A stretch of DNA of 48,993 bases from contig QPMI01000321.1 in NCBI GenBank assembly GCA_004431415.1, forward strand, positions 1-48,993. Direction: 5' to 3'. The notes under the pieces are model-generated. The model had not been told where the DNA came from. It did no database searches and worked only from the letters and a program-made list of their open reading frames with translations. Of this stretch, positions 21,557 through 48,762 are shown one piece after another. The stretch's first letter is position 1; every line of letters starts with the position of its first letter. Source of the DNA: Cyanophora paradoxa CCMP329. Lineage: Eukaryota > Plantae > Glaucophyta. The position numbers were made by a program, and so were the translations under genes.

Positions 21557-22571
21557 CGACCCCGCCCCCAAAGTAGAGGCCGTGCTGTGCCCCCTGCAAG
21601 ATCTAGATCTAGAGCCGGCTGCTAGGCCGCAGCGGTCGGAGCGGAATTCGAATGCGAGCGGTGAGGCGGTTTTGCCAGTCGCATGCGCAGGTTAACGTTT
21701 GATGACGAAACTCGAATCGGCGAGCTCAAGGAACGGGTGAGCATGCGCCCGCCGGAAGGGGGAGGGGGGGGGGGGGGGGGGCAATCCGCAGAGGCGGAGT
21801 GAAAGATGCCCGCGCGCCGCGGCGCGACACTGTGACACGCGCTGCACACTCAGATGCGATGCATTCACATTCGAACTCCTAAGATCTAGAACTCCTAAAT
21901 CCTAAATCATTGAATGCGGGTTCGGCTCCAAAAAATACGAAAGATAATTTAGCACGATAAAATGCATCCAGCAAAAAAACACCAGGATAGGTATACGTAG
22001 GACTTGAAAAATGTAAAGAGGTATAAGCCACGTGCACATCATTCAATGATAGATCGTAAGCTTGAAGGGACGCGTGAAAGACGATCGGGGATAGTTGAGA
22101 AATCAACACCAGAAAATCGGGTGTCGCAAAGGACTCAAAGCCACGGGGCTTCTCGAGCGTGAAGCTCCATTCAAACCCTTAACATACGCTATTAGTTATA
22201 GAAAAGACCGAAGACCTCATGAACGACATTCATATCTACAGGTATCTGCAACGAGGGGGAAAGCCTGCATAGTGATACGTAAAGCTCAACGTAAGAAGAC
22301 ACCTTAGGATGCAATTGCAATGCTGAAAACACTCTGTGACATGCTGATGAAACGTGCTCTCATAAATTAAGCTAAAAAAATGGAACTGCGAGAGCTAGCG
22401 GAAAGGAACTGCTACTAGTACTTGTAGACTCTACACTACGCAATTGCGAGATTGACATCGGTTGCGCAGAAATCTCTACAGGGGAACGTGAAAGGTGGCT
22501 GGGCCGCGGGGCGGGCGAGGCTCGCGGGGGGGCCTCGGGCCCCCCCCCCAGCCCTTCGCCGGGGGCCGGCC

Positions 22572-23401
22572 TCAGTAGATGCCGGCGCCGGCGGAAGGAA
22601 AGCTCGGGTGCGAGGGGAACGGCGCCGCGGGGCGGGGGCCGCCGGTGGAGGGGCGCGGGGCGGCGGAGAAGCCGGCGAGGGCGAGCTGCGCCAGGAACTG
22701 CTGCTGAAACGCGAACTCGGCCTCCGCCGCCGACTGCGCCGCCAGCCGCCGGTCCGCCAGCAGCGCCGCGAACTGCCGCCGGCGTACGCGTCGGGCCTCG
22801 AGCGCGGCGCCGCGGGGCGGGGGCGGGGGCGGAGGCGGGGGCGCACCTCCTCCTCCGAGACGGTGCGGACCTCGGGGCGGCTGTAGCCCTTGCCCGACGG
22901 GGAGCCGACGACGATGCACGCCGCGCCGATGCCGCGCGACGCCGCGAGGACGGCGTCGAAGAGGCGCTCCTGGGAAGGCAGGGCGAGGGTCGGCGAGACG
23001 AGCGCGAAGAGGGCGCGCCCGGGGTGCGAGGCTGCCAAGGCGCGGAGGTCGAGCGGGAGGCGGCCGTCGGAGAGGCGCGCCGGCGGCTCCTCGGGCTCCT
23101 GGCGGAGGGCCTCCCCGATTCGGGCAAGGGCGCCTTCGCGGCAGCCCGGGACGGACTGGACGCGGTAGCCCTCGCCGCTGGCGACGAGGACGCCGCCGAG
23201 GCGGGCGGCGTCGAGGAGGGGCCGGAGGCGCCAGGAGCGGGCGAGGGTCTCGAGGGCCGAGGTGTTGCCGACCTGCGCGCGAGGGGCCGCGTCGGCGGGG
23301 GACCCGAGGGCGAGGACGGGGAGGCGGGGAACGACGTACGAGGTAGAGCGTGATCTCGCGCCCCGCATCGCCCTCGCGCTCCCCCGCCTGCGCATGCGCC
23401 G

Positions 23402-23458
<57 letters not shown>

Positions 23459-25018
23459 GCCGCCGCTGACCGTGCATCACGAGGGCGCACTGCAGGCCGC
23501 GCGAGACGCGCACGAGGAGCTCGAGGGCGGCGTGCACGGGCTGCACCGCGGGGGCCGCCGCGGCGACGGCGAGCGAAGCCTGCTCGACGGCGCGGAGCGA
23601 GGCGGAGGCGGCGTCCTGCTCGGGGGACTCGCCGGCGGCGAGGACGGCGCGCAGGGTGCCGAGGGCGTCGGCGAGGAGGCGGATGCGCCCGTGCCAGTCG
23701 ATCTGCTCGCCCAGCGGGACGAGGCTCGTAGAGACGGCCAGGATCGCCTCCGCCGCCACCGTCCCCGCCGCCTCCAGCGTGCGCAACGTCCGCACCAGCG
23801 CCCCGCGCGAATCCACGGGGAGCGAGAGGATACCACGCAGCTCGCTCGACGCGAGGCCCAGCGCGCGGTGCGGCTCGCGCCCGCCCCCGCCGGCCGCGCC
23901 ATGGCCGTGCCCCCCGCCCCCCGCCCTGGGCGTCGGCGAGGTCGACTTGGGCGAGTTGGGCGGCGTCGTGTGCCAGAAGATGCAGTTCTTCCCGAACACG
24001 CAGAAGCCCTCCTGCGCGCACCGCATGGTCTGCATTAAAAGGCGCCCCGTAAAATAGACGAGACATAAAATCGCGGGCACCTTGTAGAATCGGGTGCAAG
24101 GCCTACGACGAACAGCCAGGATTAGAAGAAGCCGCCGCCAGACACGATACGAATCCGCGGGCACCTTAGTTTCTGCTTGTAGAACGAGGCGGCTGGGCGC
24201 TGCTCCTCCTCAGAATGGGCGAAATAGCAGTCTGGGGGAAGAAGTCAAAATTGCTATTTTAAACCCTGCAGTACTCGCAAAGCTCACCTTCCGAACTGTT
24301 CGTTGTTGATGCGAGAGCAAGAACATGTCAGAAAGACGGCAGAGCGAGAAGCCCACGGCCGCCGGGCGACAGGACTAGAGGACTAGAGGCGGTCAAACTT
24401 CTACGAGCGGGGATGACGCACGAGTGCTTGCACTCTTGCCGGACGAAGCGCTGCCGGAGCGTGAGTGCGAGTGCTTGCAATATTAAGATACATCCATACA
24501 CAGGGCTCTTTCACGCACATGCTTGCACAAAACGGTCTTGCAGGAGGGGCCTTTCGGGCAGAAAGCGCGCTTCTGCATGTGGATGCACGGCCCGGCGCTC
24601 GCCGAAGCGATGAGGTCGCTCTTTGAAGGCCGTGCATCTTGCAGTTGGCAAGATCCAGACAGGTCCGAGTCCGAGCCCGTGCTGTGCGTCCGCCCGCCGT
24701 TCAGACTGCTGTGGTGGCCATCACTGCAGTCGCTCACGCCGTCCAGACCGAGGCCCAGGTCGACAATCTGCGCCAGACGCTCTGGTCACCAACCGGCACC
24801 TAATCGTTCCGCGCGCGAGGAAGGCTCTTCGGCGCCCAGGCCTTGCGCGTGCGCCGCGAAAGTGGGCGTACCTGTGCAGAGGAAAATGGAAGGGAGTGCG
24901 ATGCGCCAACGCTGTTGGCCGACGAGCTCGAGGTCTTCGACAGGAGGTCACTCGCCTCGATGACAGCGCTGATGTCGGAAGCATGCGAGGCGGGCCACAG
25001 GGCCATGTCAAGGCCCAT
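22572..25018 (-). CDS. Tandem CCCH zinc-finger protein with poly-Q tract
   Basis: Hand-spliced: ..KTVLCKH|RFVRQECKHS|SE|DCYFAHSEEEQR..KLR|PCTRFYK|EGFCVFGKNCIFWH (C-x8-C-x6-C-x3-H and C-x8-C-x5-C-x3-H), then a helical region and Q18. Start ATG 25018 or 25006 inferred; stop 22572 tentative. Confidence 0.75.
23403..23456. repeat. (CTG)18 / (CAG)18 microsatellite encoding poly-Gln
   Basis: Pure CTG run on the + strand, read as Q18 in the minus-strand CCCH gene frame. Confidence 0.95.
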
Positions 25019-25302
25019 CGTGCTTGTGGTCTGCAGGGGCGGTCCCCGCGCGCAGTATTCGAGGCGCTGCAGCCGCTGCTGCCGAGACTGGTTCTTGCGC
25101 AGGTGCACGTGGTGGTCGTACGCGTACGTATCAGGTATACACGCTAGCGCTTTTCCTGCCACCGTCCGGACTGCTGCGCGCACCTATACTCTGCAATCTG
25201 TTAGGCGAGTCCAAGGCGACACGATCATCGGATATCGATGGGTTTGTCGGTGAAGTTGTCGCCTCGCGCTCCGGCCGGCCGCGACCGGCCCAGCCTGCCA
25301 GG

Positions 25303-25325
25303 TGCGAGGGGCTAGACAGGCCGGT
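25303..25325 (+). repeat. Left 23-bp terminal inverted repeat
   Basis: Perfect reverse complement of 37512-37534; followed by a degenerate direct copy AGGGGTATGACAGGCCGG at 25330-25347. Confidence 0.85.
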
Positions 25326-26260
25326 TATCAGGGGTATGACAGGCCGGAAACCCTCTTTTCCAGATGTCCCAGAACTGTATGATTTTAAAAAAGGAGTTCG
25401 CGGTGTCTGAGGGGCTTCGTTTGTGCAAAAGCATGGAGCATTATACGACTAGACCCGATATCTTTGCAGCCAGGCGGCGTCTATGAACTGGGCTCCGTAT
25501 GGTCGACCTTGCAACCACGCACAAGCGCTAGCACGCAGTTCTGGGCGCCGCAAGCAGCTGCGACATGAGGCGCAGGCCAAAACGCAACGTTTCAGCTAGT
25601 TAGCCCGCCGCTTAGAGTGACGACGTCGACAGGCGGCCGCAAGGGGGGTACGCATTGCAGTCAGCAAGCACGACGTCACTCTGCGCCCGCAGACCGTCGG
25701 ACTCTGCAGGCGCAGCGCTAGCACCGCACGTGAGCAGCTGTGCGGCCGGCCGCACGCATGTGATCGTGAGCAGCTCTGCTTGAAAATCGCGAGCTCGTTA
25801 TGATTAGCAGCTATAGGACGCGGAGCGGCAAGCGCACTATAGAGCTAGAACAAGTATACAGCATAAGGAATCTATATTAGCTACACGCGCGCATTTGCCG
25901 CCCTCTCGCTCGCGTGTGCACGTACGCGTGGTCATTTGACCACACAGCATGCGCAGCATATGCATATCGCGCAGCTGCAGCTGCAACTTGCAACCGAGAG
26001 CCGGACACTTAGCAGCTCATCTAACACTGTGAGTCGCCTTACTTTGAAGCTACATAAACTGCCTAACTTGCTCGCAGCGCTAATCCAATCGCTCTCTGTG
26101 GCGTGTGGCCAATTGGCCACACAGCAGCTGAACAGAGAAGCGAGCCTTTTCACGGCGCAACGCGATCAACCGGCGAACGAAAGCGCATGCCGGTACTAAT
26201 TGCATACTTTCCTTGCTTCCTTCTCTTAAAAACCCATCAGCAGCGGGCCCGCCCCCCTCT

Positions 26261-29200
26261 CCCTGCCCCCCGGCCGCCCCGCAACCAGGTACCCCCCTTG
26301 GGCGCTCCCGGCCGGGGTCCCCCCCTAGGCTCGGCCCCTCGGGCGCGCTAGCGGCGGGCCCCGCGCGCCGTCGCCGTCGCTTTAATCCTGACATCGAATT
26401 CTCGGCCGCAGTGAGCCCGCCCCTGCCCCCGGCCGCCCCGCAACCAGGTACCCCCTTGGGCGCTGCCGGCCGGGGTCCCCCCTAGGCTCGGCCCCTCGGG
26501 CGCGCTAGCGGCGGGCCCCGCGCGCCGTCGCCGTCGCTTTAATCCTGACATCGAATTCTCGGCCGCAGTGAGCCCGCCCCCTGCCCCCCGGCCGCCCGCA
26601 ACCAGGTACCCCCTTGGGCGCTCCCGGCCGGGGTCCCCGCCTAGGCTCGGCCCTCGGGCGCGCTAGCGGCGGGCCCCGCGCGCCGTCGCCGTCGCTTTAA
26701 TCCTGACATCGAATTCTCGGCCGCAGTGAGCCCGCCCCTGCCCCCCGGCCGCCCCGCAACCAGGTACCCCCTTGGGCGCTCCCGGCCGGGTCCCCCCTAG
26801 GCTCGGCCCCTCGGGCGCGCTAGCGGCGGGCCCCGCGCGCCGTCGCCGTCGCTTTAATCCTGACATCGAATTCTCGGCCGCAGTGAGCCCGCCCCCTGCC
26901 CCCCGGCCGCCCCGCAACCAGGTACCCCCTTGGGCGCTCCCGGCCGGGGTCCCCCCTAGGCTCGGCCCCTCGGGCGCGCTAGCGGCGGGCCCCGCGCGCC
27001 GTCGCCGTCGCTTTAATCCTGACATCGAATTCTCGGCCGCAGTGAGCCCGCCCCTGCCCCCGGCCGCCCCGCAACCAGGTACCCCCTTGGGCGCTGCCGG
27101 CCGGGGTCCCCCCTAGGCTCGGCCCCTCGGGCGCGCTAGCGGCGGGCCCCGCGCGCCGTCGCCGTCGCTTTAATCCTGACATCGAATTCTCGGCCGCAGT
27201 GAGCCCGCCCCCTGCCCCCGGCCGCCCCGCAACCAGGTACCCCCCTTGGGCGCTCCGGCCGGGGTCCCCCCTAGGCTCGGCCCTCGGGCGCGCTAGCGGC
27301 GGGCCCCGCGCGCCGTCGCCGTCGCTTTAATCCTGACATCGAATTCTCGGCCGCAGTGAGCCCGCCCCTGCCCCCCGGCCGCCCCGCAACCAGGTACCCC
27401 CCTTGGGCGCTCCCGGCCGGGGTCCCCCCTAGGCTCGGCCCTCGGGCGCGCTAGCGGCGGGCCCCGCGCGCCGTCGCCGTCGCTTTAATCCTGACATCGA
27501 ATTCTCGGCCGCAGTGAGCCCGCCCCCTGCCCCCCGGCCGCCCCGCAACCAGGTACCCCCTTGGGCGCTGCCGGCCGGGGTCCCCCCTAGGCTCGGCCCC
27601 TCGGGCGCGCTAGCGGCGGGCCCCGCGCGCCGTCGCCGTCGCTTTAATCCTGACATCGAATTCTCGGCCGCAGTGAGCCCGCCCCTGCCCCCCGGCCGCC
27701 CGCAACCAGGTACCCCCTTGGGCGCTCCCGGCCGGGGTCCCCCCTAGGCTCGGCCCTCGGGCGCGCTAGCGGCGGGCCCCGCGCGCCGTCGCCGTCGCTT
27801 TAATCCTGACATCGAATTCTCGGCCGCAGTGAGCCCGCCCCCTGCCCCCGGCCGCCCCGCAACCAGGTACCCCCTTGGGCGCTCCCGGCCGGGGTCCCCC
27901 CTAGGCTCGGCCCTCGGGCGCGCTAGCGGCGGGCCCCGCGCGCCGTCGCCGTCGCTTTAATCCTGACATCGAATTCTCGGCCGCAGTGAGCCCGCCCCTG
28001 CCCCCGGCCGCCCCGCAACCAGGTACCCCCCTTGGGCGCTCCCGGCCGGGGTCCCCCCTAGGCTCGGCCCCTCGGGCGCGCTAGCGGCGGGCCCCGCGCG
28101 CCGTCGCCGTCGCTTTAATCCTGACATCGAATTCTCGGCCGCAGTGAGCCCGCCCCTGCCCCCGGCCGCCCCGCAACCAGGTACCCCCTTGGGCGCTGCC
28201 GGCCGGGGTCCCCCCTAGGCTCGGCCCCTCGGGCGCGCTAGCGGCGGGCCCCGCGCGCCGTCGCCGTCGCTTTAATCCTGACATCGAATTCTCGGCCGCA
28301 GTGAGCCCGCCCCCTGCCCCCCGGCCGCCCCGCAACCAGGTACCCCCTTGGGCGCTCCCGGCCGGGTCCCCCCTAGGCTCGGCCCCTCGGGCGCGCTAGC
28401 GGCGGGCCCCGCGCGCCGTCGCCGTCGCTTTAATCCTGACATCGAATTCTCGGCCGCAGTGAGCCCGCCCCTGCCCCCCGGCCGCCCCGCAACCAGGTAC
28501 CCCCTTGGGCGCTGCCGGCCGGGGTCCCCCCTAGGCTCGGCCCTCGGGCGCGCTAGCGGCGGGCCCCGCGCGCCGTCGCCGTCGCTTTAATCCTGACATC
28601 GAATTCTCGGCCGCAGTGAGCCCGCCCCTGCCCCCCGGCCGCCCCGCAACCAGGTACCCCCTTGGGCGCTCCCGGCCGGGTCCCCCCTAGGCTCGGCCCC
28701 TCGGGCGCGCTAGCGGCGGGCCCCGCGCGCCGTCGCCGTCGCTTTAATCCTGACATCGAATTCTCGGCCGCAGTGAGCCCGCCCCTGCCCCCCGGCCGCC
28801 CCGCAACCAGGTACCCCCTTGGGCGCTCCCGGCCGGGGTCCCCCCTAGGCTCGGCCCTCGGGCGCGCTAGCGGCGGGCCCCGCGCGCCGTCGCCGTCGCT
28901 TTAATCCTGACATCGAATTCTCGGCCGCAGTGAGCCCGCCCCTGCCCCCCGGCCGCCCCGCAACCAGGTACCCCCTTGGGCGCTCCCGGCCGGGGTCCCC
29001 CCTAGGCTCGGCCCCTCGGGCGCGCTAGCGGCGGGCCCGCGCGCCGTCGCCGTCGCTTTAATCCTGACATCGAATTCCCGGCCGCAGTGAGCCCGCCCCC
29101 TGCCCCCCGGCCGCCCCGCAACCAGGTACCCCCCTTGGGCGCTGCCGGCCGGGGTCCCCCCCTAGGCTCGGCCCCTCGGGCGCGCTAGCGGCGGGCCCCG

Positions 29201-32200
29201 CGCGCCGTCGCCGTCGCTTTAATCCTGACATCGAATTCTCGGCCGCAGTGAGCCCGCCCCCTGCCCCCCGGCCGCCCCGCAACCAGGTACCCCCTTGGGC
29301 GCTGCCGGCCGGGGTCCCCCCTAGGCTCGGCCCTCGGGCGCGCTAGCGGCGGGCCCCGCGCGCCGTCGCCGTCGCTTTAATCCTGACATCGAATTCTCGG
29401 CCGCAGTGAGCCCGCCCCCTGCCCCCCGGCCGCCCCGCAACCAGGTACCCCCTTGGGCGCTCCCGGCCGGGGTCCCCCCTAGGCTCGGCCCCTCGGGCGC
29501 GCTAGCGGCGGGCCCCGCGCGCCGTCGCCGTCGCTTTAATCCTGACATCGAATTCTCGGCCGCAGTGAGCCCGCCCCTGCCCCCCGGCCGCCCCGCAACC
29601 AGGTACCCCCCTTGGGCGCTGCCGGCCGGGGTCCCCCCTAGGCTCGGCCCCTCGGGCGCGCTAGCGGCGGGCCCCGCGCGCCGTCGCCGTCGCTTTAATC
29701 CTGACATCGAATTCTCGGCCGCAGTGAGCCCGCCCCCTGCCCCCCGGCCGCCCCGCAACCAGGTACCCCCTTGGGCGCTGCCGGCCGGGGTCCCCCCTAG
29801 GCTCGGCCCCTCGGGCGCGCTAGCGGCGGGCCCCGCGCGCCGTCGCCGTCGCTTTAATCCTGACATCGAATTCTCGGCCGCAGTGAGCCCGCCCCTGCCC
29901 CCCGGCCGCCCCGCAACCAGGTACCCCCTTGGGCGCTCCCGGCCGGGGTCCCCCCCTAGGCTCGGCCCCTCGGGCGCGCTAGCGGCGGGCCCCGCGCGCC
30001 GTCGCCGTCGCTTTAATCCTGACATCGAATTCTCGGCCGCAGTGAGCCCGCCCCCTGCCCCCCCGCCGCCCCGCAACCAGGTACCCCCCTTGGGCGCTCC
30101 CGGCCGGGGTCCCCCCTAGGCTCGGCCCCTCGGGCGCGCTAGCGGCGGGCCCCGCGCGCCGTCGCCGTCGCTTTAATCCTGACATCGAATTCTCGGCCGC
30201 AGTGAGCCCGCCCCTGCCCCCGGCCGCCCCGCAACCAGGTACCCCCTTGGGCGCTCCCGGCCGGGGTCCCCCCTAGGCTCGGCCCCTCGGGCGCGCTAGC
30301 GGCGGGCCCGCGCGCCGTCGCCGTCGCTTTAATCCTGACATCGAATTCTCGGCCGCAGTGAGCCCGCCCCTGCCCCCGGCCGCCCCGCAACCAGGTACCC
30401 CCCTTGGGCGCTGCCGGCCGGGGTCCCCCCTAGGCTCGGCCCCTCGGGCGCGCTAGCGGCGGGCCCCGCGCGCCGTCGCCGTCGCTTTAATCCTGACATC
30501 GAATTCTCGGCCGCAGTGAGCCCGCCCCCTGCCCCCGGCCGCCCCGCAACCAGGTACCCCCCTTGGGCGCTGCCGGCCGGGGTCCCCCCTAGGCTCGGCC
30601 CCTCGGGCGCGCTAGCGGCGGGCCCCGCGCGCCGTCGCCGTCGCTTTAATCCTGACATCGAATTCTCGGCCGCAGTGAGCCCGCCCCCTGCCCCCCGGCC
30701 GCCCCGCAACCAGGTACCCCCCTTGGGCGCTGCCGGCCGGGGTCCCCCCCTAGGCTCGGCCCCTCGGGCGCGCTAGCGGCGGGCCCCGCGCGCCGTCGCC
30801 GTCGCTTTAATCCTGACATCGAATTCTCGGCCGCAGTGAGCCCGCCCCCTGCCCCCCCGGCCGCCCCGCAACCAGGTACCCCCTTGGGCGCTGCCGGCCG
30901 GGGTCCCCCCTAGGCTCGGCCCCTCGGGCGCGCTAGCGGCGGGCCCCGCGCGCCGTCGCCGTCGCTTTAATCCTGACATCGAATTCTCGGCCGCAGTGAG
31001 CCCGCCCCTGCCCCCCGGCCGCCCCGCAACCAGGTACCCCTTGGGCGCTCCCGGCCGGGGTCCCCCCTAGGCTCGGCCCCTCGGGCGCGCTAGCGGCGGG
31101 CCCCGCGCGCCGTCGCCGTCGCTTTAATCCTGACATCGAATTCTCGGCCGCAGTGAGCCCGCCCCCTGCCCCCCGGCCGCCCCGCAACCAGGTACCCCCT
31201 TGGGCGCTCCCGGCCGGGGTCCCCCCTAGGCTCGGCCCCTCGGGCGCGCTAGCGGCGGGCCCGCGCGCCGTCGCCGTCGCTTTAATCCTGACATCGAATT
31301 CTCGGCCGCAGTGAGCCCGCCCCTGCCCCCCGGCCGCCCCGCAACCAGGTACCCCCTTGGGCGCTGCCGGCCGGGGTCCCCCCTAGGCTCGGCCCTCGGG
31401 CGCGCTAGCGGCGGGCCCGCGCGCCGTCGCCGTCGCTTTAATCCTGACATCGAATTCTCGGCCGCAGTGAGCCCGCCCCTGCCCCCGGCCGCCCCGCAAC
31501 CAGGTACCCCCTTGGGCGCTGCCGGCCGGGGTCCCCCCTAGGCTCGGCCCCTCGGGCGCGCTAGCGGCGGGCCCCGCGCGCCGTCGCCGTCGCTTTAATC
31601 CTGACATCGAATTCTCGGCCGCAGTGAGCCCGCCCCCTGCCCCCGGCCGCCCCGCAACCAGGTACCCCCTTGGGCGCTGCCGGCCGGGTCCCCCCTAGGC
31701 TCGGCCCCTCGGGCGCGCTAGCGGCGGGCCCCGCGCGCCGTCGCCGTCGCTTTAATCCTGACATCGAATTCTCGGCCGCAGTGAGCCCGCCCCCTGCCCC
31801 CCGGCCGCCCCGCAACCAGGTACCCCCTTGGGCGCTGCCGGCCGGGGTCCCCCCTAGGCTCGGCCCTCGGGCGCGCTAGCGGCGGGCCCGCGCGCCGTCG
31901 CCGTCGCTTTAATCCTGACATCGAATTCTCGGCCGCAGTGAGCCCGCCCCCTGCCCCCGGCCGCCCCGCAACCAGGTACCCCCTTGGGCGCTGCCGGCCG
32001 GGGTCCCCCCTAGGCTCGGCCCTCGGGCGCGCCAGCGGCGGGCCCCGCGCGCCGTCGCCGGCGCATTAGTCCTGACATCGAATTCTCGGCCGCAGTGAGC
32101 CCGCCCCCTGCCCCCCGGCCGCCCCGCAACCAGGTACCCCCCTTGGGCGCTCCCGGCCGGGGTCCCCCCCTAGGCTCGGCCCCTCGGGCGCGCCAGCGGC

Positions 32201-32256
32201 GGGCCCCGCGCGCCGTCGCCGTCGCTTTAATCCTGACATCGAATTCTCGGCCGCAG
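26261..32256 (+). repeat. Satellite A, ~158-161 bp unit, ~38 tandem copies
   Basis: Unit ..GCAACCAGGTACCCCCTTGGGCGC..CCTAGGCTCGGC..GCTAGCGG..GCTTTAATCCTGACATCGAATTCTCGGCCGCAGTGAGCCC.. repeated head to tail, with one EcoRI, KpnI, AvrII and NheI site in most units. Copy number estimated from length. Confidence 0.97.
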
Positions 32257-33276
32257 AGAGCCTCCCCCCCCCACCCACCCCTGCCCACCCCTCCGTTTAT
32301 GTTATGATGTGAATAATGTACGAGTGAACTCTCGACGACTTCAAGGCTTTTAAGTAGCTGGCTGACGGTGCCACTGTGGTCTGTCCTAGTGGAATCGTCC
32401 GGGCATGGAGCCGTCATTCACAGTATACGTGGGGGCACTAAGCAGCACTAGCTATATAGGCAGCACTAGGCAGCACTGTGGCACAAAATCTAATTACTAC
32501 ACGCGAGTTCCAGTGAATGGGTGATATATTAGGCTTATATTAGTCTTTATAAGCGATATACATGCTTATGTTGAGTGCTCATCGAGAGTCCAACCAAGGT
32601 CATTCATCATGATGACTGAGTTGGGTGATGATCAGTTGATGTGTTTGAGAGCTCGTTGAACGATTTATCGGATTTCCATTAAGCGGGAGGATATCCGAGC
32701 CCGATACATGGCATGTATTCTGAAAGCGCTTTTTATTGTCGTTCACATGATATGCTTGAGTCTTATTGATCTGAATTCCATCCAGAGATAATCAGCTATA
32801 AATGATCCAACCCCTCCTGTGCACCCCCCACAACCTCGAGGCCCGCCTCTTGCCTGCCGCCCGGAGACCTCGGCTCATCTTAAAGATTCGGCATCCTCGT
32901 TCATAGTATGTTGCTTTTCAGTGCTCCGATTCGGGCGCGGGGCCTGCCCTGGGGTGGCCAGGCGCGGTTCATCGGGCCCAACACCTCATGCGCCCCATCA
33001 CTACCTTGCAATTGAGGCGGGCCTTTCGTCTTGCGCCCGGGGCCCCGGGCTCATCTTCTACATTATATATCTCTGTTCCCCGTATTTTGTTTCGCAGCGC
33101 CTCGATTCAGTTGCGGGGCCTGCCCTAGTCGCATGAGAGCATGCGTTGCGGATGCGTTGTACTTTCATTGCATGCATATGCGTAGCGGATGCGGTGTTCA
33201 TGCTTTGCACATGCGTCGAACATGCGTACAGATGCTTTGTATTTTCCCTCTACATCTCATCTCTTGACGGAGAGCA
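32257..33276. other. AT-richer unique core between the two satellite arrays
   Basis: Sharp drop in GC relative to the flanking arrays; no convincing ORF. Confidence 0.8.
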
Positions 33277-36200
33277 CGGCCCGGGGCTCGCACCAGGGGT
33301 ACAGCGTTCAGGGGGCGGCGGGGGCAGGGGGGGAGGGTCCCTGCGCGCGCGGCGGTCAGACCCAGGCCATATTTAGAATCTCTATCCGTCGACGCGCGCT
33401 TGTAGGGCCCTCGCCGGGCCATCGGCTGGCGGGGAGCGCGGCCCGGGGCTCGCACCAGGGGTACCGGGTTCAGGGGGCGGCGGGGCAGGGGGGAGGGTCC
33501 CTGCGCGCGCGGCGGTCAGACCCAGGCCATATTTAGAATCTTTATCCGTCGACGCGCGCTTGTAGGGCCCTCGCCGGGCCATCGGCTGGCGGGGAGCGCG
33601 GCCCGGGGCTCGCACCAGGGGTACCGGGTTCAGGGGGCGGCGGGGGCAGGGGGGGTGGGTCCCTGCGCGCGCGGCGGTCAGACCCAGGCCATATTTAGAA
33701 TCGCTATCCGTCGACGCGCGCTTGTAGGGCCCTCGCCGGGCCATCGGCTGGCGGGGAGCGCGGCCCGGGGCTCGCACCAGGGGTACAGCGTTCAGGGGGC
33801 GGCGGGGGCAGGGGGTGGGTCCCTGCGTGCGCGGCGGTCAGACCCAGGCCATATTTAGAATCGCTATCCGTCGACGCGCGCGTGTAGGGCCCTCGCCGGG
33901 CCATCGGCTGGCGGGGAGCGCGGCCCGGGGCTCGCACCAGGGGTACCGGGTTCAGGGGGCGGCGGGGGCAGGGGGGAGGGTCCCTGCGCGCGCGGCGGTC
34001 AGACCCAGGCCATATTTAGAATCGCTATCCGTCGACGCGCGCGTGTAGGGCCCTCGCCGGGCCATCGGCTGGCGGGGAGCGCGGCCCGGGGCTCGCACCA
34101 GGGTACAGCGTTCAGGGGCGGCGGGGGCAGGGGGGTGGGTCCCTGCGCGCGCGGCGGTCAGACCCAGGCCATATTTAGAATTGCTATCCGTCGACGCGCG
34201 CTTGTAGGGCCCTCGCCGGGCCATCGGCTGGCGGGGAGCGCGGCCCGGGGCTCGCACCAGGGGTACCGGGTTCAGGGGGCGGCGGGGCAGGGGGGAGGGT
34301 CCCTGCGCGCGCGGCGGTCAGACCCAGGCCATATTTAGAATCTTTATCCGTCGACGCGCGCTTGTAGGGCCCTCGCCGGGCCATCGGCTGGCGGGGAGCG
34401 CGGCCCGGGGCTCGCACCAGGGGTACAGCGTTCAGGGGGCGGCGGGGGCAGGGGGGGAGGGTCCCTGCGCGCGCGGCGGTCAGACCCAGGCCATATTTAG
34501 AATCTCTATCCGTCGACGCGCGCTTGTAGGGCCCTCGCCGGGCCATCGGCTGGCGGGGAGCGCGGCCCGGGGCTCGCACCAGGGGTACCGGGTTCAGGGG
34601 GCGGCGGGGGCAGGGGGGGAGGGTCCCTGCGCGCGCGGCGGTCAGACCCAGGCCATATTTAGAATCTTTATCCGTCGACGCGCGCTTGTAGGGCCCTCGC
34701 CGGGCCATCGGCTGGCGGGGAGCGCGGCCCGGGGCTCGCACCAGGGGTACCGGGTTCAGGGGGCGGCGGGGGCAGGGGGGTGGGTCCCTGCGCGCGCGGC
34801 GGTCAGACCCAGGCCATATTTAGAATCGCTATCCGTCGACGCGCGCTTGTAGGGCCCTCGCCGGGCCATCGGCTGGCGGGGAGCGCGGCCCGGGGCTCGC
34901 ACCAGGGGTACAGCGTTCAGGGGGCGGCGGGGGCAGGGGTGGGTCCCTGCGTGCGCGGCGGTCAGACCCAGGCCATATTTAGAATCGCTATCCGTCGACG
35001 CGCGCGTGTAGGGCCCTCGCCGGGCCATCGGCTGGCGGGGAGCGCGGCCCGGGGCTCGCACCAGGGGTACCGGGTTCAGGGGGCGGCGGGGGCAGGGGGG
35101 AGGGTCCCTGCGCGCGCGGCGGTCAGACCCAGGCCATATTTAGAATCGCTATCCGTCGACGCGCGCGTGTAGGGCCCTCGCCGGGCCATCGGCTGGCGGG
35201 GAGCGCGGCCCGGGGCTCGCACCAGGGTACAGCGTTCAGGGGCGGCGGGGCAGGGGGGTGGGTCCCTGCACGCGCGGCGGTCAGACCCAGGCCATATTTA
35301 GAATCGCTATCCGTCGACGCGCGCTTGTAGGGCCCTCGCCGGGCCATCGGCTGGCGGGGAGCGCGGCCCGGGGCTCGCACCAGGGGTACCGGGTTCAGGG
35401 GGCGGCGGGGGCAGGGGGGAGGGTCCCTGCGCGCGCGGCGGTCAGACCCAGGCCATATTTAGAATCTTTATCCGTCGACGCGCGCTTGTAGGGCCCTCGC
35501 CGGGCCATCGGCTGGCGGGGAGCGCGGCCCGGGGCTCGCACCAGGGGTACAGCGTTCAGGGGCGGCGGGGCAGGGGGTGGGTCTCTGCGCGCGCGGCGGT
35601 CAGACCCAGGCCATATTTAGAATCGCTATCCGTCGACGCGCGCTTGTAGGGCCCTCGCCGGGCCATCGGCTGGCGGGGAGCGCGGCCCGGGGCTCGCACC
35701 AGGGGTACAGCGTTCAGGGGGCGGCGGGGGCAGGGGGTGGGTCCCTGCGCGCGCGGCGGTCAGACCCAGGCCATATTTAGAATCGCTATCCGTTGACGCG
35801 CGCTTGTAGGGCCCTCGCCGGGCCATCGGCTGGCGGGGAGCGCGGTCCGGGGCTCGCACCAGGGGTACAGCGTTCAGGGGGCGGCGGGGGCAGGGGGTGG
35901 GTCCCTGCGCGCGCGGCGGTCAGACCCAGGCCATATTTAGAATCGCTATCCGTCGACGCGCGCTTGTAGGGCCCTCGCCGGCCATCGGCTGGCGGGGAGC
36001 GCGGCCCGGGCTCGCACCAGGGGTACAGCGTTCAGGGGCGGCGGGGCAGGGGGTGGGTCTCTGCGCGCGCGGCGGTCAGACCCAGGCCATATTTAGAATC
36101 GCTATCCGTCGACGCGCGCTTGTAGGGCCCTCGCCGGGCCATCGGCTGGCGGGGAGCGCGGCCCGGGGCTCGCACCAGGGGTACCGGGTTCAGGGGGCGG

Positions 36201-36772
36201 CGGGGGCAGGGGGGAGGGTCCCTGCGCGCGCGGCGGTCAGACCCAGGCCATATTTAGAATCTTTATCCGTCGACGCGCGCTTATAGGGCCCTCGCCGGGC
36301 CATCGGCTGGCGGGGAGCGCGGCCGGGGCTCGCACCAGGGGTACAGCGTTCAGGGGGCGGCGGGGGCAGGGGGGTGGGTCCCTGCGCGCGCGGCGGTCAG
36401 ACCCAGGCCATATTTAGAATCGCTATCCGTCGACGCGCGCGTGTAGGGCCCTCGCCGGGCCATCGGCTGGCGGGGAGCGCGGCCCGGGGCTCGCACCAGG
36501 GGTACCGGGTTCAGGGGGCGGCGGGGGCAGGGGGAGGGTCCCTGCGCGCGCGGCGGTCAGACCCAGGCCATATTTAGAATCGCTATCCGTCGACGCGCGC
36601 TTGTAGGGCCCTCGCCGGGCCATCGGCTGGCGGGGAGCGCGGTCCGGGGCTCGCACCAGGGGTACAGCGTTCAGGGGCGGCGGGGGCAGGGGGTGGGTCC
36701 CTGCGCGCGCGGCGGTCAGACCCAGGCCATATTTAGAATCTCTATCCGTCGAAGCGCGCTTGTAGCGCCCTC
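33277..36772 (+). repeat. Satellite B, ~160 bp unit, ~22 tandem copies
   Basis: Unit ..GGCTCGCACCAGGGGTAC..GGTCAGACCCAGGCCATATTTAGAATCGCTATCCGTCGACGCGCGC..GGGCCCTCGCCGGGCCATCGGC.. repeated, with a SalI site in most units. Confidence 0.97.
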
Positions 36773-37511
36773 GGCGGCCTCGATGCGCGAGATTTGAGCA
36801 GCGCGCGAGCGCGCGGGCCGGCGCCCGGGAGCGCAATTGCAAGCGCGTTGCGCGCTCGCGCAACGGAAGCCATATCGCGATCGGCGGGAGCATTGCGCGG
36901 GTGCCGGTCGCGCGCGGGTTCTCACACTGGGCCTCGAGCTCGCGCTTGCCCGCAGTCGACGTCCGCGTGGCCCGGCGCAACTGCCACCTGTGAGCACGTG
37001 GCTCCGCTCGCGCGCTCGAGCTCGCCGCTCGCGCACAGCGCTCGCGCGCTCGCGGCGCAACAGCCAACTGTGTCGCTCGCTGAGGCTGGTTGGCTGGAAA
37101 CTGCTTCGATGCATGATGTATGAGCGCACCTTCTGCCTACCGAGCTCCCGGACGAATGCTGCCGGCTTGCCGAGGGGGGGGGGTGGCGGGGGGGTATCAG
37201 TTCTCGCCAGCTCCCGCAGCTGACGGGGACCGCGCCGGGCCCCAGCTTGTGGCTGCAAAAGAACGCATATGCGCCGCGCATGCACGCCTTGCTCGCTAGA
37301 CCCGCCGTAAGCGCCCCAGTGCTGAGCAGCACGCGGACGCCGCGACGTATATGGGATGACCACTGCTGGCGAGCTCCCGCGCATTTGCAATAGATGTACA
37401 GCATGCCATACACCACTCCTGCTTGCATATTTACGCCCCCTGCGCCCCGCACTCGATACACACACGGCATATACATACTTCATAGGATTGGCGCATTAGA
37501 ACGCTAGTATT

Positions 37512-37534
37512 ACCGGCCTGTCTAGCCCCTCGCA
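37512..37534 (-). repeat. Right 23-bp terminal inverted repeat, which includes the non-palindromic loop (37518-37534) of the giant palindrome
   Basis: ..GTATTACCGGC-CTGTCTAGCCCCTCGCA-GCCGGTAATAC.. Confidence 0.85.
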
Positions 37535-38277
37535 GCCGGTAATACTAGCGTTCTAATGCGCCAATCCTATGAAGTATGTATATGCCGTGTGTGTATCGAG
37601 TGCGGGGCGCAGGGGGCGTAAATATGCAAGCAGGAGTGGTGTATGGCATGCTGTACATCTATTGCAAATGCGCGGGAGCTCGCCAGCAGTGGTCATCCCA
37701 TATACGTCGCGGCGTCCGCGTGCTGCTCAGCACTGGGGCGCTTACGGCGGGTCTAGCGAGCAAGGCGTGCATGCGCGGCGCATATGCGTTCTTTTGCAGC
37801 CACAAGCTGGGGCCGGCGCGGTCCCCGTCAGCTGCGGGAGCTGGCGAGAACTGATACCCCCCGCCACCCCCCCCCCTCGGCAAGCCGGCAGCATTCGTCC
37901 GGGAGCTCGGTAGGCAGAAGGTGCGCTCATACATCATGCATCGAAGCAGTTTCCAGCCAACCAGCCTCAGCGAGCGACACAGTTGGCTGTTGCGCCGCGA
38001 GCGCGCGAGCGCTGTGCGCGAGCGGCGAGCTCGAGCGCGCGAGCGGAGCCACGTGCTCACAGGTGGCAGTTGCGCCGGGCCACGCGGACGTCGACTGCGG
38101 GCAAGCGCGAGCTCGAGGCCCAGTGTGAGAACCCGCGCGCGACCGGCACCCGCGCAATGCTCCCGCCGATCGCGATATGGCTTCCGTTGCGCGAGCGCGC
38201 AACGCGCTTGCAATTGCGCTCCCGGGCGCCGGCCCGCGCGCTCGCGCGCTGCTCAAATCTCGCGCATCGAGGCCCGC

Positions 38278-41200
38278 CGAGGGCGCTACAAGCGCGCTTC
38301 GACGGATAGAGATTCTAAATATGGCCTGGGTCTGACCGCCGCGCGCGCAGGACCCACCCCTGCCCCGCCGCCCCCTGAACGCTGTACCCCTGGTGCGAGC
38401 CCCGGACCGCGCTCCCCGCCAGCCGATGGCCCGGCGAGGGCCCTACAAGCGCGCGTCGACGGATAGCGATTCTAAATATGGCCTGGTCTGACCGCCGCGC
38501 GCGCAGGGACCCCCCCTGCCCCGCCGCCCCCTGAACCCGGTACCCTGGTGCGAGCCCCGGCCGCGCTCCCCGCCAGCCGATGGCCCGGCGAGGGCCCTAC
38601 ACGCGCGCGTCGACGGATAGCGATTCTAAATATGGCCTGGGTCTGACCGCCGCGCGCGCAGGGACCCACCCCCCTGCCCCGCCGCCCCTGAACGCTGTAC
38701 CCCTGGTGCGAGCCCGGGCCGCGCTCCCGCCAGCCGATGGCCCGGCGAGGGCCCTATAAGCGCGCGTCGACGGATAAAGATTCTAAATATGGCCTGGGTC
38801 TGACCGCCGCGCGCGCAGGACCCTCCCCCCCTGCCCCCGCCGCCCCCTGAACCCGGTACCCCTGGTGCGAGCCCCGGCCGCGCTCCCCGCCAGCCGATGG
38901 CCCGGCGAGGGCCCTACAAGCGCGCGTCGACGGATAGCGATTCTAAATATGGCCTGGGTCTGACCGCCGCGCGCGCAGAGACCCACCCCCTGCCCCGCCG
39001 CCCCCTGAACGCTGTACCCTGGTGCGAGCCCGGGCCGCGCTCCCCGCCAGCCGATGGCCCGGCGAGGGCCTACAAGCGCGCGTCGACGGATAGCGATTCT
39101 AAATATGGCCTGGGTCTGACCGCCGCGCGCGCAGGGACCCACCCCTGCCCCCGCCGCCCCCTGAACGCTGTACCCCTGGTGCGAGCCCCGGACCGCGCTC
39201 CCCGCCAGCCGATGGCCCGGCGAGGGCCCTACAAGCGCGCGTCAACGGATAGCGATTCTAAATATGGCCTGGGTCTGACCGCCGCGCGCGCAGGGACCCA
39301 CCCCCTGCCCCCGCCGCCCCCTGAACGCTGTACCCCTGGTGCGAGCCCCGGGCCGCGCTCCCCGCCAGCCGATGGCCCGGCGAGGGCCCTACAAGCGCGC
39401 GTCGACGGATAGCGATTCTAAATATGGCCTGGGTCTGACCGCCGCGCGCGCAGAGACCCACCCCCTGCCCCCGCCGCCCCCTGAACGCTGTACCCCTGGT
39501 GCGAGCCCCGGGCCGCGCTCCCCGCCAGCCGATGGCCCGGCGAGGGCCCTACAAGCGCGCGTCGACGGATAAAGATTCTAAATATGGCCTGGGTCTGACC
39601 GCCGCGCGCGCAGGGACCCTCCCCCCTGCCCCCGCCGCCCCCTGAACCGGTACCCCTGGTGCGAGCCCCGGGCCGCGCTCCCCGCCAGCCGATGGCCCGG
39701 CGAGGGCCCTACAAGCGCGCGTCGACGGATAGCGATTCTAAATATGGCCTGGGTCTGACCGCCGCGCGTGCAGGGACCCACCCCCCCTGCCCCCGCCGCC
39801 CCCTGAACGCTGTACCCCTGGTGCGAGCCCCGGGCCGCGCTCCCCGCCAGCCGATGGCCCGGCGAGGGCCCTACACGCGCGCGTCGACGGATAGCGATTC
39901 TAAATATGGCCTGGGTCTGACCGCCGCGCGCGCAGGGACCCTCCCCCCCTGCCCCCGCCGCCCCCTGAACCCGGTACCCCTGGTGCGAGCCCCGGGCCGC
40001 GCTCCCCGCCAGCCGATGGCCCGGCGAGGGCCCTACACGCGCGCGTCGACGGATAGCGATTCTAAATATGGCCTGGGTCTGACCGCCGCGCACGCAGGGA
40101 CCCACCCCTGCCCCGCCGCCCCTGAACGCTGTACCCCTGGTGCGAGCCCCGGGCCGCGCTCCCCGCCAGCCGATGGCCCGGCGAGGGCCCTACAAGCGCG
40201 CGTCGACGGATAGCGATTCTAAATATGGCCTGGGTCTGACCGCCGCGCGCGCAGGGACCCACCCCCCTGCCCCCGCCGCCCCTGAACCCGGTACCCCTGG
40301 TGCGAGCCCCGGGCCGCGCTCCCCGCCAGCCGATGGCCCGGCGAGGGCCCTACAAGCGCGCGTCGACGGATAAAGATTCTAAATATGGCCTGGGTCTGAC
40401 CGCCGCGCGCGCAGGGACCCTCCCCCCTGCCCCCGCCGCCCCTGAACCCGGTACCCTGGTGCGAGCCCCGGGCCGCGCTCCCCGCCAGCCGATGGCCCGG
40501 CGAGGGCCCTACAAGCGCGCGTCGACGGATAGAGATTCTAAATATGGCCTGGGTCTGACCGCCGCGCGCGCAGGGACCCTCCCCCCTGCCCCGCCGCCCC
40601 CTGAACGCTGTACCCTGGTGCGAGCCCCGGGCCGCGCTCCCCGCCAGCCGATGGCCCGGCGAGGGCCCTACAAGCGCGCGTCGACGGATAAAGATTCTAA
40701 ATATGGCCTGGGTCTGACCGCCGCGCGCGCAGGGACCCTCCCCCCTGCCCCCGCCGCCCCTGAACCCGGTACCCTGGTGCGAGCCCCGGGCCGCGCTCCC
40801 GCCAGCCGATGGCCCGGCGAGGGCCCTACAAGCGCGCGTCGACGGATAGCAATTCTAAATATGGCCTGGGTCTGACCGCCGCGCGCGCAGGACCCACCCC
40901 CCCTGCCCCCGCCGCCCCTGAACGCTGTACCCTGGTGCGAGCCCCGGGCCGCGCTCCCCGCCAGCCGATGGCCCGGCGAGGGCCCTACACGCGCGCGTCG
41001 ACGGATAGCGATTCTAAATATGGCCTGGGTCTGACCGCCGCGCGCGCAGGGACCCTCCCCCCTGCCCCGCCGCCCCCTGAACCCGGTACCCCTGGTGCGA
41101 GCCCCGGGCCGCGCTCCCCGCCAGCCGATGGCCCGGCGAGGGCCCTACACGCGCGCGTCGACGGATAGCGATTCTAAATATGGCCTGGGTCTGACCGCCG

Positions 41201-41748
41201 CGCACGCAGGGACCCACCCCCTGCCCCCCCGCCCCCTGAACGCTGTACCCCTGGTGCGAGCCCCGGGCCGCGCTCCCCGCCAGCCGATGGCCCGGCGAGG
41301 GCCTACAAGCGCGCGTCGACGGATAGCGATTCTAATATGGCCTGGGTCTGACCGCCGCGCGCGCAGGGACCCACCCCCCTGCCCCCGCCGCCCCCTGAAC
41401 CCGGTACCCCTGGTGCGAGCCCCGGGCCGCGCTCCCCGCCAGCCGATGGCCCGGCGAGGGCCCTACAAGCGCGCGTCGACGGATAAAGATTCTAAATATG
41501 GCCTGGGTCTGACCGCCGCGCGCGCAGGGACCTCCCCCCTGCCCCCGCCGCCCCCTGAACCCGGTACCCCTGGTGCGAGCCCCGGCCGCGCTCCCCGCCA
41601 GCCGATGGCCCGGCGAGGGCCTACAAGCGCGCGTCGACGGATAGAGATTCTAAATATGGCCTGGGTCTGACCGCCGCGCGCGCAGGGACCCTCCCCCCTG
41701 CCCCCGCCGCCCCTGAACGCTGTACCCCTGGTGCGAGCCCCGGGCCGT
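38278..41748 (-). repeat. Satellite B, mirrored copy
   Basis: Reverse complement of 33277-36772. Confidence 0.95.
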
Positions 41749-42757
41749 GCTCTCCGTCAAGAGATGAGATGTAGAGGGAAAATACAAGCATCTGTACGCA
41801 TGTTCGACGCATGTGCAAAGCATGAACACCGCATCCGCTACGCATATGCATGCAATGAAAGTACAACGCATCCGCAACGCATGCTCTCATGCGACTAGGG
41901 CAGGCCCGCAACTGAATCGAGGCGCTGCGAAACAAAATACGGGGAACAGAGATATATAATGTAGAAGATGAGCCCGGGCCCCGGGCGCAAGACGAAAGGC
42001 CCGCCTCAATTGCAAGGTAGTGATGGGGGCGCATGAGGTGTTGGGCCCGATGAACCGCGCCTGGCCACCCCAGGGCAGGCCCCGCGCCCGAATCGGAGCA
42101 CTGAAAAGCAACATACTATGAACGAGGATGCCGAATCTTTAAGATGAGCCGAGGTCTCCGGGCGGCAGGCAAGAGGCGGGCCTCGAGGTTGTGGGGGGGT
42201 GCACAGGAGGGGTTGGATCATTTATAGCTGATTATCTCTGGATGGAATTCAGATCAATAAGACTCAAGCATATCATGTGAACGACAATAAAAAGCGCTTT
42301 CAGAATACATGCCATGTATCGGGCTCGGATATCCTCCCGCTTAATGGAAATCCGATAAATCGTTCAACGAGCTCTCAAACACATCAACTGATCATCACCC
42401 AACTCAGTCATCATGATGAATGACCTTGGTTGGACTCTCGATGAGCACTCAACATAAGCATGTATATCGCTTATAAGACTAATATAAGCCTAATATATCA
42501 CCCATTCACTGGAACTCGCGTGTAGTAATTAGATTTTGTGCCACAGTGCTGCCTAGTGCTGCCTAATAGCTAGTGCTGCTTAGTGCCCCCACGTATACTG
42601 TGAATGACGGCTCCATGCCCGGACGATTCCACTAGGACAGACCACAGTGGCACCGTCAGCCAGCTACTTAAAAGCCTTGAAGTCGTCGAGAGTTACTCGT
42701 ACATTATTCACATCATAACATAAACGGAGGGTGGGCAGGGTGGGTGGGGGGGGAGGC

Positions 42758-48700: not shown

Positions 48701-48762
48701 GGGGGACCCCGGCCGGGAGCGCCCAAGGGGGGTACCTGGTTGCGGGGCGGCCGGGGGGCAGG
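42758..48762 (-). repeat. Satellite A, mirrored copy
   Basis: Reverse complement of 26261-32256. Confidence 0.95.

Follow-up and report, generated by a model that had tools for sequence, protein, structure and literature searches.

Several described systems share features with the locus analyzed here. The Tetris/DAIBAM foldback elements of Drosophila virilis are non-autonomous and consist of a flank domain, a tandem array of satellite-sized units, a unique middle, an inverted array and a second flank domain; they carry no ORF, generate target-site duplications (TSDs) of 8–10 bp, and their autonomous partner has not been found (PMC4079207). Galileo, an element of the P superfamily, contains tandem repeats in its long inverted arms, and terminal inverted repeats (TIRs) of about 26–31 bp with a second inner site belong to the same group (PMC3573991, PMC7776569, PMC10983969). 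The Mutator/Foldback elements FB, Tm1 and Phantom have composite TIRs with tandem motifs that are unequal in number between the two ends (PMC3169594). In Ac/Ds sister-chromatid transposition, double Ds and P hybrid-element insertion, a transposon end is cleanly joined to an inverted copy, and the resulting inverted duplications have been documented for Ac/Ds sister-chromatid transposition (PMC3239180). In Cyanophora paradoxa, DNA transposons are present and methylated (PMC12344493), and 11.5% of the genome is unclassified repeat (PMC6704402); our literature search returned nothing relevant on TIR transposons of Cyanophora. TIR elements of the retroviral-integrase type, including Ginger2, IS3EU, Polinton-like and Mu/Tn7-type elements, have TG...CA ends.

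We analyzed a window of 48,993 nt of C. paradoxa DNA, in which a sequence-only reading had proposed a foldback or satellite-carrying non-autonomous DNA transposon. The analysis supports this proposal, which is strengthened by the inverted homology of the two satellites described below. The locus is probably a non-autonomous foldback-type TIR transposon of C. paradoxa, of the cut-and-paste kind, the right end of which was cut at its tip and then ligated either to its own TIR or to that of a sister.

Termini, layout and insertion site

A perfect 23-bp inverted repeat is located at 25303–25325 (+) and 37512–37534 (−), and reaches 26 bp when one mismatch is allowed. The left TIR (25303–25328, + strand) begins with TG, and the right TIR (37509–37534, − strand) gives a CA-3′ end on the + strand. 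No further match to the 23-mer with up to three mismatches exists in the window, where 0.01 would be expected, and outside the satellites no exact inverted repeat between 24.1 and 37.5 kb is longer. The inverted repeat is unique in the window and not a product of chance. The 23-mer was also absent from viral, metagenome and prokaryote genome collections, which hold no C. paradoxa. At 25330–25347 (+), 23 bp inward, a degenerate direct copy of TIR bases 5–22 (15 of 18 identical) is a candidate second transposase-binding site; the right end has no counterpart. Both the terminal repeat and this inner copy had been noticed in the sequence-only reading and are confirmed. A hairpin between the left flank and the TIR was rejected (fold z = 0.13). 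The true terminus could be 25299, 25303 or 25307; the TG...CA ends are present given the terminus 25303/37534, and an AGGGG start at 25307, with a CG duplication inside a palindromic target as proposed in the sequence-only reading, may be an alternative.

The order of parts previously read from the letters was borne out as 0.96 kb of unique DNA, 38 units of satellite A, a 1-kb core, 22 units of satellite B and 0.76 kb of unique DNA. The left unique region (25348–26260; GC 0.56), which measures 958 bp with its TIR, has no Pfam match and no match in plasmids. The core (32271–33267; 997 bp) is AT-richer (GC 0.51). Within it, some 113 bp have long been duplicated in direct orientation (about 32838–32950 and 33014–33126); homology of this duplication to the satellites was rejected. 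For the right unique region (36778–37508; GC 0.66; 757 bp with its TIR), the stop-free frames of up to 255 aa have neither a Pfam match nor an exact database entry. The left unique region and the reverse-complemented right one show no homology (score 25; shuffle mean 24.6).

At 25303, host gene sequence gives way abruptly to the element. The host gene, with CCCH-type zinc-finger motifs (22572–25250, − strand; 5′ end approximate), is a paralogue of C. paradoxa tig00020848_g14537, and the element is located at its 5′ end or just upstream; the CCCH assignment comes from a visible C-x8-C-x5-C-x3-H motif, and Pfam gave no match on the exon pieces, compared one at a time. In the host flank, the perfect 9-bp palindrome CCTGCCAGG (25294–25302) abuts the left end and is a candidate for the left half of a TSD. 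Palindromic 9-mers of this kind occur at 0.5–0.8% of host positions. Neither the 7-mer nor the 8-mer immediately left of 25303 is a palindrome. Candidate TSDs of 1–12 bp were listed from the left flank only, the right flank being a mirror copy of the element, as shown below.

The 9-bp palindrome would suit the 9-bp TSD of a Mutator/Foldback element, the MULE TSD being 9–11 bp, with only the left copy visible here (PMC3169594). However, Tm1 has no target consensus, and MULE repeats begin near the termini, whereas about 0.75–0.95 kb of unrelated DNA intervenes here. A TSD of 6 or 10 bp would give a 3-nt GCC microhomology for the fold-back junction described below. The 6-bp version (GCCAGG) and the TG...CA ends would recall TIR elements of the retroviral-integrase type, which have TSDs of 4–6 bp and use an rve integrase, but this locus differs from them in its satellite-filled foldback layout and in having no integrase or capsid genes.

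Inverted satellite arrays with splice-like signals

Satellite A (26261–32270, + strand) consists of 38 units with a modal consensus of 159 bp and one main C/G variant site; given homopolymer under-calls, the true unit length is perhaps 161–162 bp. Satellite B (33268–36777, − strand) consists of 22 units (21.9 copies) with a consensus of 161 bp and four variant sites, and contains a 7-unit higher-order duplication. Satellite A aligned with reverse-complemented B with a score of 80, where 1000 shuffles averaged 25.6 and reached 48 at most, and the alignment was collinear with 51–74% identity by segment, while same-strand alignment gave nothing. This comparison shows that A and B are inverted homologues, so that the element has a degenerate Tetris/Foldback layout; the sequence-only reading had recognized two opposed arrays and overlooked their homology. 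The satellite A motif was not found in viral contigs, a collection without C. paradoxa. A G-quadruplex-type motif is present in each unit, but such motifs are common in the host (about 2 per kb on each strand), and a special role for it was rejected.

As in foldback elements, inverted tandem arrays surround a unique middle; long, highly similar inverted arms that include the outer flank domain were not found. Unlike in Tetris, the arrays have diverged to about 60–65% identity and attain a far greater length (6.0 and 3.5 kb, in a total of 12.2 kb), the flank domains are unrelated except for the 26-bp tip, the units carry splice-like signals, and mirror-arm DNA stands where the right copy of a TSD would lie.

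The sequence-only reading had also raised a centromere-like cassette, and the unit size of about 160 bp, the inverted nucleosome-sized arrays around the AT-richer 1-kb core and the 7-unit higher-order duplication fit this analogy. Some yeasts have inverted-repeat centromeres that resemble this array-core-array plan. The palindrome described below would then be the center of an isochromosome, and a large palindrome would be most easily stable with a centromere at its center. Beyond unit size and layout, no further positive evidence for such a cassette emerged; the locus directly adjoins gene-dense DNA and a gene 5′ end, it is only 12 kb long and GC-rich, and a centromere would not need 26-bp TIRs. 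We regard this reading as highly improbable.

For the splice-like signals, a model trained on 20 host introns was used, for which the host introns scored 2.3–16.8 bits on leave-one-out. Satellite A (+) has one acceptor per unit of 11.9 bits (equalled in 18 of 1000 shuffles), and satellite B (−) has one of 17.2 bits (equalled in 1 of 1000 shuffles). The per-unit acceptors are restricted to A(+) and B(−), that is, to converging strands, and the best donor lies at a homologous GTACCCC, 38 nt after the acceptor in A and 37 nt in B, which delimits an exon-like piece of 38 (possibly 39) nt in A and 37–38 nt in B. In addition, a branch-point-like TACTAAT, a pyrimidine tract and CAG close the left unique region directly before the first satellite A unit. 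Antisense host windows attain 11.9 bits in 0–29% of cases.

These signals could reflect two convergent spliced repeat genes, encoding proline-rich proteins or lncRNAs, with repeated exons of 37–39 nt and introns of about 120 nt, which would end in the shared core, the TIRs being a relic or the genes cargo. The 159-bp A unit is open in one frame. In B, however, the frame is lost because the exon-like piece is 37–38 nt, one frame carries a stop, and several variants alter amino acids; moreover, the array ORFs have no protein match, the A score is attained by antisense host windows as given above, and the TIRs and the junction at the TIR tip would be left unexplained. Such genes are very unlikely to account for the locus.

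Ten ORFs of the element, searched unspliced, had no Pfam match and no entry in an exact look-up, and Rfam gave no match within the element in a search of the whole window. Homologues were found neither for a satellite A/core ORF, in a search that covered proteins of 74–236 aa only, nor for a satellite B ORF among 1.84 billion representatives. In a metagenome scan with an aspartic protease, the sole find was a relative with 33% identity. No recognizable transposase is present among the ten ORFs by Pfam, and none of the unique parts exceeds 1 kb; the earlier statement that no enzyme is encoded holds to this extent. The element is probably non-coding, as had also been stated, but this part of the claim is weakened and not secure because every unit carries host-type acceptor and donor sites. 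In the foldback transposon that we favor, tandem amplification would probably have built up the arrays from an ancestral unit, about 160 bp long and resembling a host intron-exon-intron piece.

The palindrome at the right terminus

The most informative feature of the locus, overlooked in the sequence-only reading, is the fold-back junction at the right end. From 37535 to the end of the window at 48993, the sequence (− strand) is the reverse complement of 37517 back to 26031, and comprises the right unique region, satellite B, the core, satellite A and part of the left unique region. The right TIR is thus the apex of a palindrome with arms of at least 11.5 kb, and since 37535–48993 is a mirror copy and not host flank, the element has no right flank here and no TSD can be read. 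The two arms share 11,360 matches, with 12 substitutions and about 200 indels, mostly in homopolymers; unit numbers are equal and the variant order is nearly so, B being identical in 22 of 22 units and A differing at 2 of 38 diagnostic sites.

The complete right end (CA-3′) is joined cleanly to base 18 of an inverted right TIR, which leaves the outermost 17 nt of the right TIR (37518–37534) unpaired at the apex; the junction reads CTCGCA-GCCGGT. From the 49-kb length, about one in several thousand randomly placed fold-backs would be expected to come so close to the TIR tip, at a distance of a few bases. The exact mirror fusion at the right tip suggests, without proving, that an enzyme cut there recently.

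A purely technical origin of the mirror arm would leave the element real and say nothing about transposase activity. A PacBio fold-back from a molecule with a missing adapter or a self-primed molecule would have to have passed Canu trimming. The published assembly was made from RSII long reads with Canu v1.0 (PMC6704402). Gene numbering suggests that the window is a whole contig (probably tig00001355) and that it stops inside the mirror arm; the apex is then 11.5 kb away, near the 15-kb insert size. Nearly all non-homopolymer deletions fall in the mirror arm. On the other hand, the fold point is the TIR tip to the base, and toward the contig end gaps are more frequent in the first arm than in the mirror arm. 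Neither a SMRTbell adapter nor a telomere array is present at the apex, and both were rejected as its origin. Canu also trims hairpin reads unless other reads span the junction (PMC5411767). A technical fold-back is distinctly unlikely on this evidence.

The apparent end of the contig in the mirror arm would also be expected if the cassette were a natural chromosome end, closed covalently as a hairpin with a 17-nt loop and read through as a wrap-around inverted copy. The hairpin telomeres of Borrelia leave such a wrap-around signature in long reads. They complicate long-read assembly there, and no telomere repeat array occurs anywhere in the window. However, the 23-mer is also internal at 25303, like an insertion end, protelomerase hairpin loops are very short, and we know of no hairpin telomeres on eukaryotic nuclear chromosomes. 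We give this possibility hardly any weight.

Routes to the junction and biological meaning

For the foldback transposon with a rejoined right end, the TIRs would be bound by a transposase encoded elsewhere, which would have mediated insertion of the element at the CCCH-finger gene's 5′ end, and the right end would later have been cut at its tip. Three routes from that cut yield identical letters, and each requires a break at the TIR tip. The right end may have been joined into the TIR of a sister copy by sister-chromatid or hybrid-element insertion to give an inverted double element, a credible route, if short of even chances. A one-ended cut with the right end joined to its own opposite strand or to a sister end, as a hairpin or sister fusion, is slightly less probable, and the same weight falls on a fold-back molecule closed during library making. 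In contrast to Ac/Ds and P hybrid insertion, insertion here would have targeted base 18 of the element's own TIR, and the second copy's far end is absent from the assembly.

A more specific version of this explanation is a P-superfamily element, a Galileo-like foldback, of which one end had been cleaved. Cleavage by P transposase falls at the tip on the transferred strand and 17 bp into the TIR on the other. Joining of the 3′ end to the recessed 5′ end, either as a hairpin or through fusion of both replicated sister ends, would give a palindrome with a 17-nt spacer. The 17-nt 3′ extension is the P-element signature (PMC7776569, PMC10983969). The spacer is identical to the outermost 17 nt of the TIR and would need neither sequencing error nor microhomology. 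P elements prefer promoter regions, and this element is located at a gene 5′ end. A preference of P elements for the TIRs of other P elements as insertion sites was not counted as evidence here. The P termini are 5′-CA...TG-3′, that of Drosophila P being CATG, whereas the inverted match here starts with TG at 25303 and has TG...CA ends. The zebrafish Pdre2 likewise starts with CATACC (PMC10983969). When the terminus is shifted to the CA at 25299, the offset becomes 21 and not 17. In addition, the TSDs of P elements measure 7–8 bp, and the 7- and 8-bp candidates here are non-palindromic; the element has no transposase, that of P elements being a THAP/GTP-binding DDE enzyme, and no P-type ends in a glaucophyte were found in the literature searched. 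The identical junction would also result from a 6- or 10-bp TSD with the GCC microhomology, from insertion with the TIR as target, or from snap-back of TG/CA with one G dropped; in the mirror arm, two-base runs drop one base in 1.4% of cases. We consider a P element unlikely. It is unlikely, too, that the apex preserves an end which a transposase cut with a 17-nt stagger and which was then closed as a hairpin or sister fusion. In that case an undescribed transposase acting on TG...CA ends would show P-like long-stagger cleavage, or form a hairpin intermediate whose loop is 17 nt long; it would be active in a glaucophyte, and its substrate would be a giant foldback element with spliceable exon-intron satellite modules.

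Against the foldback transposon with a rejoined end, just one insertion was seen, searches of collections that hold no C. paradoxa gave neither a second copy nor an empty site or autonomous partner, the left and right flank domains are non-homologous, the splice-like signals may hint at transcribed gene modules, and the mirror arm is richer in short-run deletions than the first arm, as in a poorly covered or artefactual arm.

Glaucophyte transposons are nearly undescribed. Should the junction prove to be a read artefact, the contig's final 11.5 kb would be a duplicate, leaving an unusual non-autonomous element of an otherwise ordinary kind. If the favored explanation is true, a large satellite-carrying foldback element would exist in a deep branch of the Archaeplastida, and satellite arrays would have grown from an intron-exon-like unit within a transposon. 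A real junction would be evidence for recent transposase activity in the laboratory strain.

Ends and satellite arrays of the element

The feature at 25303-37534 is real, and the sequence-only reading of it, as a 12-kb element bounded by terminal inverted repeats (TIRs) and built from two opposed satellite arrays, was accurate overall. The perfect 23-bp repeat is present at 25303-25325 (plus strand) and 37512-37534 (minus strand), extends to 26 bp when one mismatch is allowed, and has no further match within the window with three mismatches or fewer (0.01 expected by chance). A degenerate inner copy, which is direct, starts at 25330 and matches at 15/18 bases, was confirmed at the left end only. 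Tandem Repeats Finder delimited satellite A at 26261-32270 (38 copies) and satellite B at 33268-36777 (21.9 copies), in agreement with the proposed layout of a left unique region (958 bp, GC 0.56), satellite A, a core (997 bp, GC 0.51), satellite B and a right unique region (757 bp, GC 0.66). No Rfam family was matched in the whole window, and ten ORFs from the element gave zero Pfam matches. The core contains an old direct duplication of ~113 bp with a period of ~176 (32838-33126), which is not related to the satellites, and smaller CATG-rich repeats lie at 33141-33231.

The consensus of satellite A (159 bp) and that of satellite B (161 bp) can be aligned collinearly once B is reverse-complemented, a relationship that the earlier reading had missed. 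This alignment scored 80, whereas 1000 dinucleotide shuffles averaged 25.6 and never exceeded 48; the same-strand alignment of A and B remained at the background level. Over the first 70 bases the identity was 74% and 73%, and over the remainder it was 51-56%. No relationship was observed between the left and right unique regions. In satellite B, units 9-15 are a second copy of units 2-8 (33428-35660), and this 7-unit higher-order duplication is a sign of recent unequal exchange within the array. The inverted homology of A and B gives a foldback layout, and the transposon interpretation put forward in the sequence-only reading is the best supported, and is moderately probable. Tetris elements consist of a flank domain, a tandem outer domain and a middle (PMC4079207), and the element resembles a decayed form of this layout.

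The host locus and neighboring genes

Protein matches identify the host as the glaucophyte Cyanophora paradoxa, not human. A read-through ORF from the gene next to the element recovered a protein of this species. Of the 373 residues encoded by its aspartic protease gene tig00001355_g8341, 366 were matched by exact 6-mers to exon pieces at 3.9-6.3 kb; with 20 GT/GC-AG introns, the full-length protein could be threaded onto the window. These introns (gene at 3986-6258) are 51-91 nt long with CTGAC/CTGAG branch points, and 8/20 use a GC instead of a GT donor, an unusually high share. Host genes are dense and intron-rich across 1-21560; of these, the protease alone has the backing of a database match. 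From translations read by eye, we take the genes there to include an E3-ligase-like C-terminus, an aspartic protease, an ALG10-like protein, LSm6, thiamine-phosphate synthase, eIF3f, COX19 and a KEA-type antiporter, together with three lineage-specific genes. The published assembly is haploid and was built from PacBio RSII reads of ~15-kb inserts with Canu v1.0 and polished with Quiver and Illumina data, and its supplement allows at most g8338-g8353 on tig00001355 (PMC6704402). Three of these, g8340, g8348 and g8349, are without database matches and coincide with lineage-specific genes in the window. The gene numbering and the placement of the unmatched genes suggest that the window probably spans contig tig00001355 in full.

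Next to the element is a gene on the minus strand that carries CCCH-type finger motifs (22572-25250); the element borders the 5' end of this gene or lies shortly upstream of it. The gene is a paralogue of tig00020848_g14537 and is 35-94% identical to it by exon. The predicted protein of this CCCH gene was not retrieved among proteins of 290-930 aa, so the gene model may be faulty, or the insertion may have damaged the 5' end of the gene. A (CTG)22 tract at 23403-23468 encodes poly-Gln in the frame of the gene and is missing from the paralogue's protein. Between two converging genes, an AT-richer intergenic stretch (21600-22500, GC 0.52) shows a strong AT skew, and no repeat shared with the element was found in it. 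In the left flank (25270-25289), TCCGGCC and ACCGGCC are inverted partners of the left end's two GGCCGG motifs. The energy of the resulting fold was no better than that of shuffles (z 0.13), and the pairing is probably due to chance.

Splice-like signals in the satellite units

A splice model was trained on the protease gene's 20 introns. In each unit it identified one acceptor with a branch point, confined to the two homologous strands, A(+) and B(-), which converge. The A(+) acceptor scored 11.9 bits, which was reached in 18/1000 shuffles, and the B(-) acceptor 17.2 bits, reached in 1/1000; the leave-one-out scores of the host introns were 2.3-16.8 bits. Since antisense host windows score 11.9 in 0-29% of cases, the signal is modest for A, whereas it is strong for B. 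The best donor, GTACCCC, is common to both satellites and lies 38 nt (A) or 37 nt (B) downstream, and TACTAAT, a pyrimidine tract and CAG stand ahead of the first A unit. Our reading is that the ancestral unit was taken from, or still acts as, an intron-exon-intron piece of the host. In A the exon-like stretch measures 38 or 39 nt and in B 37-38 nt, so that B would lose the reading frame. Protein coding by the arrays is unlikely; no protein relative of the array ORFs was found, one search covering only proteins of similar length.

The mirror arm and the junction at the TIR tip

The rest of the window after the element, 37535-48993, is a reverse-complemented copy of the stretch from 37517 down to 26031, a mirror that the sequence-only reading had missed. 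The alignment of the mirror arm to the first arm has 11,360 matches, 12 substitutions and 202 indels, 177 of which fall in runs of at least three. The mirror arm accounts for nearly all short-run deletions, and close to the contig end the gaps are fewer in the mirror arm than in the first; this error pattern favors none of the routes considered below. Each arm has 38 A units and 22 B units; the unit variants follow one another in identical order in 22/22 B units, and in A the order differs at 2/38 diagnostic sites. These results indicate either that a single molecule was read twice or that the duplication is very recent. The satellites at 38271-41756 and 42748-48763 are duplicates of the element's own arrays, and any other finding from 37535-48993 likewise duplicates the element.

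The 17-nt spacer between the arms is identical to the right TIR's outer 17 nt, indicating that the right end is complete (CA-3') and is followed directly by an inverted right TIR from base 18 onward. Nine TIR bases lie inside the arm, and the right TIR is therefore genuine and not a product of fold-back. Because the mirror arm occupies the right side in place of host DNA, no target-site duplication (TSD) is readable there, and 25299, 25303 and 25307 remain candidates for the terminus.

The TG...CA ends fit those of integrase-type elements and depart from the P superfamily in a defining feature; Drosophila P begins with CATG. Zebrafish Pdre2 begins with CATACC (PMC10983969). Conversely, P-element transposase makes its cut in the non-transferred strand 17 bp into the TIR (PMC7776569; PMC10983969), a stagger equal to the spacer length, and Galileo, a member of the P superfamily, carries tandem repeats in its arms (PMC3573991), as the element does in its arrays. 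A perfect 9-bp palindrome adjoins the left end and would suit the 9-bp TSD of Mutator/Foldback-type elements. It was alternatively proposed that the TIR begins at AGGGG within a palindromic target; the inner repeat likewise begins with AGGGG, and with this start the 17-nt argument falls away. Given these mixed features, the element is filed under the foldback type, with no family named, and works like a foldback-type non-autonomous TIR transposon.

A transposase encoded elsewhere would recognize the 26-bp ends, with the second left site helping, and would have inserted the element next to the CCCH gene. The fold-back point coincides exactly with the tip of the TIR. Chance alone would place a chimera within a few bases of the tip about once in several thousand, and a break at the element end is thus the likely cause. 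A 6-bp (GCCAGG) or 10-bp TSD would give 3-nt microhomology for an ordinary fold-back. Three routes would yield identical letters at the junction. In the first, the right end would have inserted into the TIR of a sister copy, forming a stable inverted double element, analogous to the sister-chromatid transposition known for Ac/Ds (PMC3239180); the contig would then break because a 12-kb inverted repeat exceeds the read length. In the second, a one-ended staggered cut would have been closed as a hairpin or via fusion of replicated sister ends. In the third, the broken end would have folded back during library making. Adapter sequence was absent from the junction, and Canu trims hairpin reads that have no spanning support (PMC5411767).

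The junction may thus record recent cleavage, and the element represents a large, decayed foldback layout in a host lineage whose transposons are almost undescribed.
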